Source of the DNA: Scyliorhinus canicula
Taxonomy: Eukaryota
Reading direction: 5' to 3'
Length of the DNA: 64,000 nt
Assembly: GCF_902713615.1 (NCBI RefSeq)
Contig: NC_052168.1
Coordinates: forward strand, 5,580,001 to 5,644,000
The translations under genes and the position numbers were made by a program. Shown piece after piece: positions 2,257-48,500 of this stretch; within the stretch, counting starts at the first letter, position 1, and every line of letters begins with the position of its first letter. The notes under the pieces were generated by a model. That model made no database searches, was not told the DNA's origin, and was given only the letters and a program-made list of their open reading frames with translations.

Positions 2257-2854
2257 GGATCTTATGGTTATTACAGAATTCAATTCCCATGGATGCGATG
2301 GGGCTGAGACGTTGCCCATAAAGAGGGACCACTCTGCCATAAGTGAAGCTGGTACACACATCGGGAGGTCATTATCACTGAAGACAATGGACGTGAGTGC
2401 AGGCCGTGTGTGTGAGGGGGGCAACTGGTCAGATTCAATGCCAATTTCCCACCAGCAAGTTTAGAAAGAAAGAATTGCATTTATATAGAGCCTTTCACAA
2501 TCTCAGGATGTCCCAGAGTGCTGCACAGCCAATGAACTACGTTCGAAGCATAGTCACTGTTGTAACGTGGGAAATGCACAGTAAGCTCCCACGAAATTCA
2601 GCATGACAATGGCCAGATCATCGGTTTGTACGTTGTTGGTTGAGGGATGAATGTTGGCCCGGACATGGACGGGGGATGGGGGACGGGGGTCGGGGGAGGG
2701 GCGTGGGATCTCCCCTGCTCTTCTCCCAAGTAGTCCCCATGGGATCGTTAACAGCCTCCTGAGCGAGTAGACCTTGGTTCAATGTTTCATCCGACAGACG
2801 GCATCTCTTGACAGTGCAGCACTCTCTCAGCGTCAGCCTGGATTTAGGTTACAA

Positions 2855-3417
2855 CTAGACGTGAATGTAGGAGGGTTGATCAGTAAGTTCGTGGATGATA
2901 CAAACCTTAATGGGGGGATAAATAGTGATGAGGGTAGCTTTAGATTACAGGAGCATAAAGACGGGCTGGTCAGATGGGCTGATCAGTGGCAAATGGAATT
3001 CAATCGGGATAAGTGTGAGGTGATGCACTTGGGCAGGGCAAACAAGAAAATATGTGATAAACGGCAAGACCCTGGGGTGGTGATATGCATAAAGCAATTC
3101 TGAACATAATATTAAACACAACCTCTGACCACTAGGTGGCAGTGTAAACCCACCACCTGTCCCTGGGCCTGGGGAGTTGGGAGTAAGTCGTGTTGGAGGA
3201 TAGACGTATTTTGCAGTCGCTCTATAGCAGTTAGTGAGGGTTAGTAGTTTATTATTTTATTGATCCTAGTTATCGTTATCACCCAGTTGTTTTATAATAA
3301 ATTATTTAAACTAGATGTTCTGTAGCTCATCATTCATATCGGCCAGTGTACAGAACATGACGCTTGGGAATCACCGAGGATCAGAGGGACGTTGGTGTGC
3401 ACAAACACTGGTCCCTT
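2855..3417 (+). mobile_element. CR1 LINE RT fragment, host of a solo LTR and the R2-like insertion; resumes at 4629-4661
   Basis: ISKFVDDT...WADQWQMEFNRDKCEVMHLGR peptide, then CR1-type QRDxGV...SL sequence that continues as (V)AEQV...VVKK after 4628. Confidence 0.9.
3078..3362 (+). mobile_element. Probable solo LTR inserted in CR1, carrying a CTCF-like motif
   Basis: Interrupts CR1 coding sequence; begins TG; AATAAA near 3296; CCACTAGGTGGCAG at 3129-3142. Confidence 0.5.
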
Positions 3418-3649
3418 CGGGAGTAACTATGACTCTCTTAACGAGGATGGGAGTCTCCGACGCGTCCTGGCTACGCCGATGTTAGTTGGATTCTACCCAG
3501 GAGACTGGGTCTGTTCATAGTTACAGTAACCACGGGAATCTTACCCTAAGCACCTATTCTATACCGTGGTGAGTTGCGCCTCCACGTCGGTCCCGCCGGG
3601 CAACGGTTCCTATGAAGGGGTAGAGATGGAGGAACCGGCTAAAGCAACT
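3418..3649 (+). ncRNA. HDV-like (R2-type) self-cleaving ribozyme
   Basis: P1 (GG)CGGG 3418-3421 / CCCGCC 3592-3597; P2 AGTTGC 3572-3577 / GCAACT 3644-3649; P3 GCC 3578-3580 / GGT 3589-3591; L3 TCCACGTC; P1.1 CC/GG; P4 CGGTTCCT 3604-3611 / AGGAACCG 3630-3637; J4/2 GCTAAA with catalytic C3639. Confidence 0.88.
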
Positions 3650-4628
3650 GGTCGAGAATTTTCGGCCGATAGAAATAAGCGTGTGCATGGTACAGAGGCC
3701 TACATGTTGGGTGACCAATATGGAGGTAACCATGCTAGTAGTTGCAGGAATCTGCTGGTTCTTTACTGCAATGAGTCGCACCTCAGCGATGGGGGCACGC
3801 GCTGTTCGACGACCTCCTGATTTATCAGATTGGTTGCACACATGTCGACTGGCCGAGACCAGCAAAACCATGCTAGTACCCTCGTCCGCAAAATTTTAAA
3901 AAAGTTTGATCTTCGGATGGTGCGTGTTCCGACGCGTCCTGGCTACGCCGATGTTAGTTGGACACCACCCAAGTGACGAGGGGAGCGCATGATGCCTTTT
4001 ACCATTCTGAGGATGACGGCCCGAATGGGCAAACTTCAATGCCCAAGACCCAGCTGACGTCCGGGAGGTCGGAACGAGGTCGGAACACGGACAAGTGCTC
4101 GGATACGTCTCGACTGCCCTTCGTTGGTTGGCCTTGGTGGTGGAACGTAGTAGGGTTCTGGCGAACCCATAGAACATTGAATTTGACATTCGGTATCATC
4201 TGTCTGAACCCCGAAGGGCCGGGTGACGACGGGTGAATGACCTCTCCCGGGATGTGCGAGAGGGACAGTTACGCCTAATATGTATGTGAAGCTCGCGGTT
4301 GTTGTTATATTAATGTGTGTGTGAAATAAAAATCCTATTGTGATCAAATGATGATCGTCATTCTGTACCTGCGGGTCAGATGACACAAAGGGTTGGCCGT
4401 CTCCGGACAGACTTAAATACATCTAACCGGTTCTCAGCTCACATTTGGTGGGTGGTGACACCACGCTTGGTATCCCGCGGAATTAAAGGTCATTTTATAC
4501 TGAATCAATTAAGATCACCCCGGTCCACCAACACAGTTCCGGCTGTGGTCACTTGCTAAGGTGGTAGTACAAATCGTCGACGAGCGACGTAAAGACTCGG
4601 AATTGGCACTCTCCGGAGTGTGGTTAAA
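3418..4628 (+). mobile_element. Non-autonomous R2-retrotransposon-derived element (SIDE-like) with 28S-derived 5' leader
   Basis: CGGGAGTAACTATGACTCTCTTAA (28S up to the R2 site) at 3418-3441; HDV-like ribozyme; 3' end GGTTAAA followed by TAGC; cleanly interrupts a CR1 reading frame; no RT ORF. Confidence 0.8.
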
Positions 4629-5106
4629 TAGCAGAGCAGGTGGGAAAGTGGTTAAGAAGGCCCGCTCAGTTAGGGGTTGTCAATCCACTTCAGGATAGGC
4701 CTCCAGGATACAGCTGTGTGCACAACCCTGGAGGGAAATCATTCGGACATTAAAAAATGTATGCTTTTATCATATTCTTTGAACATTTCTCTTTACCACA
4801 CATTAAAAACCTTAAAAATGGGGGGGGAAAAAGGCAGTTGTAGCTTTGACCACCTGCCTCTGCTACCCTCCCACTCTGTCACCCCCCCCCCCCCCACCCC
4901 CATTCCCACCACGCCTTCTCCCCACAATCACCCCCCCCCCCCCCCGGCCCCCCCCCCCCCCCCCCCCCCCCCCCCGGCCCCCCCCCCCCCCCCCCATCCC
5001 TTAACAAGGGAAAACTACACAGTATAAAACCTGGGACCTGGTCGGGGAGAATGACCCTTCGGGAAGAGGAGCAATAGTTTGGTTGTGTCTGTGTACACCG
5101 TAATAA

Positions 5107-5290
5107 GGGGCTGTTTAGCACACTGGGCTAAATCGCTGGCTTTGAAAGCAGACCAAGGCAGGCCAGCACCACGGTTCAATTCCCGTACCGGCCTCCCCGA
5201 ACAGGCGCCGGAATGTGGCGACTAGGGGCTTTTCACAGTAACTTCATTGAAGCCTACTCGAATTTCATTTCATTCATTTTCGTTCATTCA
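5107..5290 (+). mobile_element. Short tRNA-derived SINE (representative; also ~14330, 19401, 20205, 25380, 33047, 40612, 47962, 60008)
   Basis: GGGGCTGTTTAGCAC head, B-box-like GGTTCAATTCCC, shared CCGAACAGGCGCCGGAATGTGGCGACTAGGGG body and TTTCA tail. Confidence 0.85.
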
Positions 5291-46429: not shown

Positions 46430-46467
46430 GGTGTTGGTGGAGGAGCTGCAGCTCAGAATCCGGGTTA

Positions 46468-46499
46468 TATTCTTGCTTCAACAGTGTTTGAACGGAATA
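46468..46499 (+). promoter_or_regulatory. Iron-responsive element (IRE) in the 5' UTR of ferritin B
   Basis: TATTCT-TGC-TTCAA-CAGTGT-TTGAA-C-GGAATA: ferritin-type UGC/C bulge, 5-bp upper stem, CAGUGN loop at 46482-46487. Confidence 0.98.
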
Positions 46500-46600
46500 G
46501 AACCCAAACTTCGATACCTCGAACTCCCATTTTAGTTTGGAAAAAAACAAATTTTTTTTTTCAACACTTTGCCAACAACAACAACAACAGCAGCAACAGG

Positions 46601-48500
46601 ATGGCTTCTCAAATCCGCCAGAATTATCACCAGGAGTGCGAGGCAGCGATGAACCGCCAAATCAACATGGAGCTGTACGCTTCCTATGTCTACATCTCGA
46701 TGGTGAGGCCAGAGATATTTACTATGTGGGTGGAGGGATTCTGAATTGGGGGGGGGGGGTATTGAGCTGGCTGGGGCATTCTGTTTTTAATTGTAACCAT
46801 CGACGGGGTTGGGGGGAAAATCGGATCTTGCGGGGCAATCCTCTGGTCTAGGAGAAGGGCGTTGTTGCTTTTGTCTCCAGTACAAAGACTAGTCCCAAGG
46901 CTAGTTGGCCTCTCGCACATAATGTGCTTGTTTAAAGCTTTAAAAGTGCTCAGGTGAAAACCTTAACTGGGTGGAGAGCTGTGGCTGGCCTTGTCAATTT
47001 CCACTGGGTCAATTTCAGTAAAAACCTTACAGGGCGGAGAGCTGTTGCTGGCCTTGTCAATTTCCAGCGGATTGGAGAAATTGAACGAGTCTGGAGAAGT
47101 TTGTGTGCCTGGTTTCACGTAACACTTTTTTTTCTCTTCTCTCTTTCCCTTTGTCCCTCTCCCTCCCAGTACGCCTTCTTCGACAGGGACGATGTCGCCC
47201 TGAAGAACTTCGCCAAGTTCTTCAAAGACCAGTCCCACGAGGAAAGGGAACATGCAGAGAAGCTGATGAAATTCCAAAACCAGCGTGGGGGACGTGTTAT
47301 CCTGCAGGATGTCTCGGTTAGTACAAAAGGACTGACTTCCCACACGCCATGCCTCACTCGAGTCTCTCTCTTGTGTAGTCTAATTCTTTTTTTTTTCTTT
47401 CCCCTCCCCCTAGAAACCTGACCGCGATGAATGGAGCAATGGTCTCGAAGCCATGAAATGTGCTCTTCACTTGGAGAGAACCGTGAATCAGTCTCTCTTG
47501 GACCTCCACAAACTGGCTTCTGACAAGTTCGATGCACAAGTATGTATGGACCTCCCTCTGATTCCTTTGTTCTACCCAAGGCCAGTTTTTCTTGTTCTTT
47601 TTTAAACCCCTCCCAGGTTCAGTGTGGACTGTAGAAATGTTTTTCATCCAGCAATTGTTTTTTAAAATAATAACAGTAAACTTTTTTTTACAATCTATTT
47701 AACCTGCACATCTTTGGGTTGTGGGAGTGAAACCCACACACACACACACACACACACAGGTGCAAAGTCCACACGGACAGTGAATCGAATGTGGGTCCTC
47801 AGTGCTGTTGTTCCAGTGCTAACCACTGTCACATGCTGCTCTTTACCTAGCAAGTATTATCATTTTAAAAAAAAATTGTTTAAAAAAAAAAAATACCAAG
47901 ACAAGGGGCCAGGCTACTATCTACTTGAACCCAAGATTTTTCTTGAGGCAGATGTTTGGCTGGGGCTGGTTTAGCTCACTCGGCTAAATCGCTGGCTTTT
48001 AAAGCAGGCCAGCAGCACGGTTCGATTCCCGTACCAGCCTCCCCGGACAGGCGCCGGAATGTGGTGACTAGGGGCTTTTCACAGTAACTTCATTGAAGCC
48101 TACTCGTGACAATAAGCGATTTTCATTTTTTCATTGGGATAATGCTGAAATTGTTTAAAATCTCCAATCATTTTATGCTGACAAATATAAATTGTCCTCC
48201 CAGGACATCAACAACTAACTGGTTATGTGTTGTCCAGCATTTAATCGAAGACTTGATTAAGTACTGCACTAGCTGAACAATAAGTGTCTGAGGTTCATTA
48301 AAGCCATGCATATTAACAACACTGTCTTTTTAAATTTCTTCCAGATGTGTGATTTTCTGGAGACTCACTACTTGGATGAGCAGGTCCAGTCTATTAAGAA
48401 GCTTGGCGATTTCGTCACCAACCTGGTTCGTCTGGGGGCTCCCCAGAATGGTATGGCCGAGTATCTGTTTGACAAGCACAGTCTGGAAGAGAGCAGTTAA
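46601..48500 (+). CDS. Ferritin B, heavy/middle-type subunit, 176 aa; join(46601..46702,47170..47316,47414..47539,48345..48500)
   Basis: Four GT-AG exons of 102/147/126/156 nt; MASQIRQNY...[10 protein letters not shown]...[12 protein letters not shown]; ferroxidase residues E27, Y34, E61, E62, H65, E107, Q141 (human H numbering) intact. Confidence 0.97.

Follow-up and report, generated by a model that had tools for sequence, protein, structure and literature searches.

The window analyzed here comprises 64,000 nt from the shark Scyliorhinus canicula (contig NC_052168.1, positions 5,580,001 to 5,644,000 of the forward strand). At positions 3418-4628 it carries a non-coding element of approximately 1.2 kb, which begins with a piece of 28S rRNA and interrupts a LINE; all features of the element are given for the + strand. 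The high-copy host LINE spans 2774-3417 and 4629 to approximately 4800. It shows a weak RVT_1 match on 2774-3100, and the flank directly upstream of the element (3365-3417, + strand) lies in the reverse-transcriptase ORF, where the frame reads ...LGITEDQRDVGVHKHWSL. Translations of the flanks in this ORF are ...DVGVHKHWSL and ...GKVVKKA. This particular LINE copy has 3047-3364 in place of about 30 nt present in other copies (joints 3046>3365). Downstream of the element, the LINE resumes with TAGC (4629-4632), the first target bases behind the R2 nick, which are common to 28S and the host LINE; contigs end loosely at 4629 before these bases and at 4632 behind them. Further downstream, a long C-rich low-complexity tract (4860-4995) is followed by a tRNA-derived SINE at approximately 5110-5260, whose depth is enormous in every DNA and RNA run. 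Far from the element, an IRE (46465-46500, + strand; 42.9 bits, above the Rfam gathering score) and the subsequent ferritin-H-like exons, represented by ORFs 46484-46744 and 46954-47421, constitute an ordinary ferritin gene with a 5' IRE.

The 28S piece at the element's 5' end (3418-3441, 24 nt, + strand) is an exact match to the 28S interval -26 to -3, counted from the R2 site, as judged from the 28S strings quoted in PMC3774820. Its 23-nt core, 3419-3441, is the sole match in the 64 kb window, with a chance expectation of 0. Within this leader, CGGGA (3418-3422) is the surviving portion of the 5' strand of helix P1. Behind the ribozyme described below, the remaining R2-derived element (3650-4628) is non-coding: no R2 ORF follows the ribozyme, the longest + strand ORF within 3566-4628 measures 92 aa, none of the ORFs contains a Pfam domain, and no remnant of a reverse transcriptase, an endonuclease or any other coding sequence was found in the element. 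A scan of this remainder with Rfam by E-value revealed no R2 3'-UTR family and just a weak SNORD35-like match, and the fold of the 3' end is no better than that of shuffled sequences. The SNORD35 match lies at 3984-4066 (+ strand) and is not significant (15.3 bits, E 3.5). This C/D-box snoRNA-like stretch shows recognizable C, D', C' and D boxes and is a curious feature of an RNA that is co-transcribed with rRNA; jumps of R2 templates onto small RNAs have been published.

A direct repeat of 50 nt connects 3456-3505 with 3928-3977 (90% identity, the first 35 nt exact), and a fainter similarity extends back from it to the element's first own bases, from approximately 3443 versus approximately 3914. 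On sequence grounds the element may thus be a composite of two units, each starting like an R2 5' end. The end of the element (4531-4628, about 100 nt) is shared with relatives of higher copy number: DNA word depth rises to approximately 80 on 4553-4638, three fixed differences (4550, 4573 and 4574) distinguish the high-depth 3' end, and one contig diverges upstream of 4531. These last 100 nt or so are probably the 3' end held in common with an autonomous R2.

For 3418-3649, an initial annotation of the sequence had proposed a complete HDV-like ribozyme whose P1 helix is supplied by 28S rRNA. Every helix can indeed be paired where it had been placed, and all strings named were found at their coordinates. 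P1, P1.1, P2, P3 and P4 are all present and form a nested double pseudoknot in the canonical order. P2 combines AGUUGC (3572-3577) with GCAACU (3644-3649), with which the ribozyme ends. P3 (3578-3591) pairs GCC 3578-3580 with GGU 3589-3591 and encloses the loop L3, UCCACGUC, at 3581-3588. According to alignment with the HDV model, L3 has the conserved U...G as well as the CC (3582-3583) which, in P1.1, pairs with GG 3598-3599. P4 is an 8-bp stem with an 18-nt loop (3604-3611 with 3630-3637); like P1.1, it derives from the model alignment and a check of the pairing. J4/2, GCUAAA (3638-3643), aligns to GGCuAA of the model and contains the predicted catalytic cytosine C3639. Finally, the 3' strand of P1, UCCCGCC (3591-3597), is, as claimed, complementary to 28S: it is the exact complement of positions -28 to -22 (GGCGGGA), the 28S sequence used being that of the strings quoted in PMC3774820 and of the stub. 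A complete P1 would require 28S positions -28 and -27. The copy in the window retains five of the seven pairs, and the calculated duplex energy amounts to -13.5 kcal/mol with 28S versus -7.3 kcal/mol in the window copy.

Between the two halves of the fold lies a J1/2 region of approximately 150 nt (3423-3571), closed by a stem of 3423-3432 with 3515-3524 and followed by a hairpin of 3529-3535 with 3564-3570; its inner pairings are ambiguous. The annotation had described J1/2 as structured by three pairings. All three exist, and the 10-bp closing stem is perfect and was equalled in only 2 of 300 shuffles; the two 7-nt pairings occur at chance level. The details of the proposed J1/2 structure are not established. 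In the MFE fold of J1/2, ACCACGG/CCGUGGU is kept and AGUCUCC/GGAGACU is swapped for other pairings. The 10-bp stem joins 28S positions -21 to -12 to element sequence. Taken together, P1 and this stem pair 17 consecutive leader nucleotides (-28 to -12) to two separate segments of the element. The sole positions at which other copies were seen to vary, 3499 and 3629, are both outside the helices. Just inside the element, GAUGGGA (3446-3452) could pair with the P1 3' strand at six of seven positions, one of them a G-U; it may be left over from an old 28S duplication, or may be a decoy P1.

Public RNA and DNA contigs as well as word depths were mapped to the window, using the RNA runs X4, X14, X16 and X18 and the DNA run X1. 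An RNA contig of 721 nt from X18 covers 3933-4632 with 0 differences and then continues for 21 nt into 28S downstream of the R2 site. Likewise, a 113-nt DNA contig from X1, which is possibly the assembly's own sample and hence not independent, covers 4520-4632 with 0 differences before entering 28S. Beyond 4632 both contigs read CAAATGCCTCGTCATCTAATT, the 28S sequence directly after TAGC downstream of the R2 site. Contigs running into 28S imply that identical copies reside in the R2 site of the rDNA and are transcribed jointly with 28S. rDNA is therefore where the master copies lie, and these are plentiful in RNA. A contig of 3461-3962 was recovered with 0-1 differences in RNA runs from four studies, and 3933-4632 was recovered likewise in X4 and X18. 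RNA word depth on the element is 97-564 in X4 and X18, 23 in X14 and 36 in X16, and it is near 0 on the flanks 3148-3408 and 4714-4800. In the DNA run, depth is approximately 10-25 over most of the element, with a few bins higher, versus approximately 15,000 for the neighboring LINE. This puts the enrichment of the element in RNA, relative to this LINE, at roughly 1000-fold.

The copy in the window itself is not the source of this RNA. No RNA contig spans its 5' junction, where depth is 0 on 3392-3434, and none crosses the 3' junction into the host flank; X18 alone passes 4632, and it does so into 28S. On these three observations, the window locus is rejected as the expressed gene. RNA contigs are also lacking on 3418-3460, for which filtering of 28S-like contigs is a possible cause; both words sampled from 3419-3485 are present in eight RNA runs. 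The runs differ in the extent of coverage: X4 and X18 contain both parts of the element at similar depth, whereas X14 and X16 cover 3461-3962 and have nothing from 3963 on, i.e., of the 3' 670 nt. Possible reasons are relatives consisting of the 5' half only, differences between individuals, or the filter. Together with the 50-nt repeat, the stop at 3962 gives a hint of a composite element, relatives of which share only its 5' half.

The insertion site can be reconstructed from unfilled copies of the host repeat. The empty host site is CCCTTAAGG^TAGC and the 28S target is CTCTTAAGG^TAGC; of the 14 bases compared around the nick, the two share 12. Short contigs of the unfilled repeat, covering 4629-4660, read ...GTACACC(A/G)GTCCCTTAAGG|TAGC, align to the upstream flank and continue AAGG|TAGC; across the junction, they read ...GTCCCTTAAGG|TAGCAGAGC. 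The 3' junction of the element, ...GGTTAAA|TAGC, falls exactly on the canonical nick position of R2. Such an exact nick-site junction on a target mimic is, as far as sequence can tell, the signature of target-primed reverse transcription by an R2 protein. In the LINE ORF, the motif CCCTTAAGGTAGC is translated as ...SLK(V)A..., and with a high-copy LINE containing this motif, the genome holds many mimics of the 28S R2 target.

On the 5' side, host sequence ends at CCCTT and 4 bp, AAGG, are missing. T3416 and T3417 are the last host bases and stand in the places of ribozyme nucleotides 1 and 2. An origin of these two Ts by mutation of the 28S Gs is ruled out by the empty-site contigs: they carry the TT, so the 28S-derived leader begins at C(-26). 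The earlier claim that this copy starts 2 nt inside the predicted cut is strengthened accordingly. Upstream host DNA has just about 9 nt in common with the leader, from which it follows that the cDNA could not anneal there and was joined end to end, with no microhomology (GG versus TT). R2 proteins are known to nick the two strands with an offset of 2 nt, and junctions without rRNA pairing arise by end-joining (PMC11331408); the end of the leader at -3 is consistent with the 2-nt offset between first- and second-strand nicks. Between the window copy and the expressed rDNA copies there is at most one difference (A3829G, in three RNA runs) in approximately 1,170 nt, which indicates a recent insertion.

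Taken together, we consider it likely, with good confidence from the sequence, that the stretch represents a well-preserved R2-type 5' processing ribozyme of the -28 class, located on a non-coding R2 derivative, of which the window contains an ectopic copy. According to the mechanism we propose, the 5' strand of P1 would not be encoded by the element; 28S positions -28 to -22 would supply it in the Pol I co-transcript. There, 28S GGCGGGA would fold with UCCCGCC, and cleavage 5' of G(-28) would free an RNA with a 28S leader, which in this element family would extend from -28 to -3, as the element joins 28S at -3. An R2 protein, supplied in trans, would then nick the 28S-target mimic CCCTTAAGG^TAGC in the LINE ORF. 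The processed RNA would be reverse-transcribed almost to its 5' end, and the cDNA end would be joined upstream without homology, which would have cost the target 4 bp and the leader its first 2 nucleotides. The data show the anatomy of the sequence, the ectopic site, the copies in rDNA and their abundance in RNA; catalysis itself, the cut at -28, the self-cleaved template and the supply of R2 protein in trans are what we infer.

The predicted cut 28 nt upstream of the R2 site coincides with the most frequent one published for R2 ribozymes (PMC3774820), many of which, as the initial annotation stated, cut in upstream 28S. In vitro mapping placed the cut of the earwig, Nasonia giraulti and silkmoth ribozymes here, and the same position has been predicted for zebra finch, planaria and others (PMC3774820). 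Furthermore, the lengths of 28S duplications at R2 5' junctions match the cut site (PMC3774820), and the window copy is their counterpart at an ectopic site. The further proposal of a self-cleaved template is one that we accept as a well-founded inference: the leader starts within 2 nt of the predicted cut, and a random cDNA end so close to it would be rare on a long 28S/R2 co-transcript. Regarding the window copy, the annotation had supposed a catalytic impairment. P1 is reduced from seven to five pairs, and single P1 mismatches abolished cleavage in the R2 ribozyme of the horseshoe crab and in other HDV-like ribozymes (PMC3774820), by analogy with which an impairment would be expected here. 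Since P1 is shortened, the two lost pairs adjoining the scissile phosphate, and the copy is not visibly transcribed, the ribozyme in the window is very probably inert.

How much weight the fold can bear depends on the possibility of a chance look-alike, in which case the element would have no ribozyme and its 5' end would have been made another way. Several scores fall on the side of this explanation. At the gathering threshold, Rfam gives no ribozyme match in the window, the IRE elsewhere being the only match. The covariance-model search that had been suggested as a check places HDV families as the top match at the expected position, and leaves them below the gathering score: under permissive filters, HDV_ribozyme (RF00094) reaches 21.7 bits, far short of the gathering threshold of 50 (the E value is 0.69 across 4227 families, or approximately 1.6e-4 if that family is taken alone), and HDV-F-prausnitzii reaches 16.5 bits versus 44 at the same place. 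A loose HDV descriptor of our own, composed of P3, L3 with CC, P1.1, P4, the J4/2 C and P2, with P1 omitted, found approximately 9 loci per 128 kb of dinucleotide-shuffled sequence versus 14 in the real window; at this chance frequency, the helices alone, or pairing by eye, are weak evidence. MFE folding of 3416-3655 did not recover the pseudoknotted fold and gave a stability no greater than that of shuffles (z = -0.55), which is uninformative for a double pseudoknot. Separately, a scan of metagenome contigs for the L3/P3/P1'/GGGCAAC core returned 51 loci. Every one of them lacks both the 28S stub and a proper J4/2, and they are chance matches in GC-rich DNA. The low Rfam score itself is explained by the model being unable to span the 150-nt J1/2; it puts the P1 5' strand wrongly on 3568-3574, with non-standard pairs. 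Against a chance fold, the two HDV families are the only + strand matches among 4227 models, at 3566-3651 and with C3639 on the catalytic cytosine, the conserved letters of L3 and J4/2 are present, a 7-nt segment is exactly complementary to the 28S position on which most R2 ribozymes rely, and the whole is located at the 5' end of an R2-site element, where such ribozymes always occur (PMC3774820). The real weight of the case lies in the 28S-complementary P1 strand, the HDV letters and model match, and the 28S stub approximately 170 nt upstream, and in view of these a fold by chance appears extremely improbable.

If the ribozyme is accepted, its cut might still be at -26 rather than -28, with a five-pair P1 (CGGGA/UCCCG) and C3596-C3597 as a 2-nt J1/4. 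In that case nothing would be missing from the processed 5' end of the ectopic copy, its P1 would be intact, and the copy would be able to cleave if it were transcribed. The copy begins exactly at -26, R2 ribozymes tolerate a J1/4 of 0-2 nt, a P1 of 4 bp exists in Nasonia, and cuts displaced to -25, -27 and -29 have been described (PMC3774820). On the other hand, in the 28S context two further G-C pairs continue the helix without a break and make it almost twice as stable (-13.5 versus -7.3 kcal/mol), in vitro mapping put the cut of elements sharing this 28S P1 at -28 (PMC3774820), C is unusual as the first P1 nucleotide, and published junction variants likewise start a few nucleotides inside the cut (PMC3774820), all of which makes a cut at -26 unlikely. 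The stub would be no record of self-cleavage at all if rDNA had been pasted in at the DNA level by repair, or if reverse transcription of an uncleaved co-transcript had stopped by chance. R2 insertions are often 5'-truncated or rearranged; yet the 3' junction coincides exactly with the R2 nick in a mimic matching at 12 of 14 positions, and no 28S extends past TAGC, which is also present in the host. With kilobases of 28S upstream on the co-transcript, it would be improbable for reverse transcription to end by chance no more than 2 nt from the predicted cut, and a structural stall is not expected, since P1 is already unwound when the enzyme meets its 5' strand. We therefore judge both of these origins, DNA-level paste and chance stop, very unlikely, and retain processing at -28 as the preferred reading.

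R2 ribozymes cutting inside 28S have been known since 2013, and in this respect the fold adds a host lineage and no new principle. New here are the rDNA-seated, RNA-abundant master copies, the ectopic copy in a LINE, and the empty-site evidence for the host origin of TT and for the AAGG loss. Outside rDNA, the target cannot have contributed the leader, whose start at -26 would report where the template RNA started in vivo. The junctions likewise show the outcome of R2 protein activity when the cDNA cannot anneal upstream, namely end-joining with a target loss of 4 bp. Furthermore, the 28S-site mimic that this high-copy LINE carries in its ORF is a concrete natural off-target, which is relevant to R2-based transgene insertion (PRINT), and a non-coding R2 derivative outside Drosophila is uncommon. 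Going one step further, the element could be an R2 SIDE from a vertebrate, the first such case, and a non-coding parasite of R2 that is active at present and abundantly co-transcribed; a very recent jump would have kept the 5' end of the in vivo template, CCCTTAAGGTAGC would then be a recurrent off-target of R2, and the 17-nt leader pairing a clamp. We put forward this combined view tentatively and with less than even confidence. If the clamp is true, P1 and the 10-bp J1/2 stem would protect or present the 28S leader.

Among known systems, the ribozyme most closely resembles the -28 class of R2 ribozymes (Eickbush, Burke & Eickbush 2013, PMC3774820). It shares with them the double pseudoknot, the use of 28S -28 to -22 as P1 5' strand, a GC-rich P1 of 6-7 bp, a P2 of at least 5 bp, a 3-bp P3, the catalytic C in J4/2, a long J1/2 that takes in what remains of the 28S leader, and the location at the 5' end of an R2-site element. 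It also fits the published R2 consensus of a 6-7 bp P1, a P2 of at least 5 bp, a variable P4 and a J1/4 of 0-2 nt, in which the gap between P1 and P1' ranges from 23 to more than 700 nt (PMC3774820); long structured J1/2 regions are likewise known for R2 ribozymes (PMC11331408). It differs from the -28 class in its shark host, its non-coding carrier, a copy without nucleotides 1-2, an activity that is predicted, and a J1/2 closed by a 10-bp helix of 28S -21 to -12 with the element. R2 elements as such are known in sharks and rays (PMC5035012, PMC13188248). With the Hepatitis delta virus ribozyme (RF00094), the stretch has the core letters CCUCC..GG, GGGCAAC and GGCUAA and the topology in common, whereas its P1 5' strand is situated about 170 nt upstream and its score is 21.7 bits versus the gathering value of 50.

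Concerning the junction, the closest parallels are the 5' junctions in honeybee, in flour beetle B and in hydra (PMC3774820 Fig. 5), in which the length of the 28S leader reports the processed 5' end of the template, and PRINT templates with an rRNA leader of 26 or 28 nt (PMC11331408), for which end-joining occurs when the cDNA cannot anneal upstream. Unlike in those R2 and PRINT junctions, the leader here lies at a non-rDNA site and cannot be confused with the 28S of the target. As for the element as a whole, SIDEs require just a ribozyme and a 3' end, and R2 SIDEs have been described only from Drosophila, where they were termed rare (PMC3414825). The element resembles these Drosophila R2 SIDEs (Eickbush & Eickbush 2012, PMC3414825) in being non-coding, in its 5' R2 ribozyme and probable R2-type 3' end, in its position at the 28S R2 site and co-transcription with rRNA, and presumably in being mobilized in trans. 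In contrast to them, it resides in a vertebrate host, has a length of approximately 1.2 kb, contains an internal 50-nt repeat, and would be cleaved in 28S rather than at the junction.
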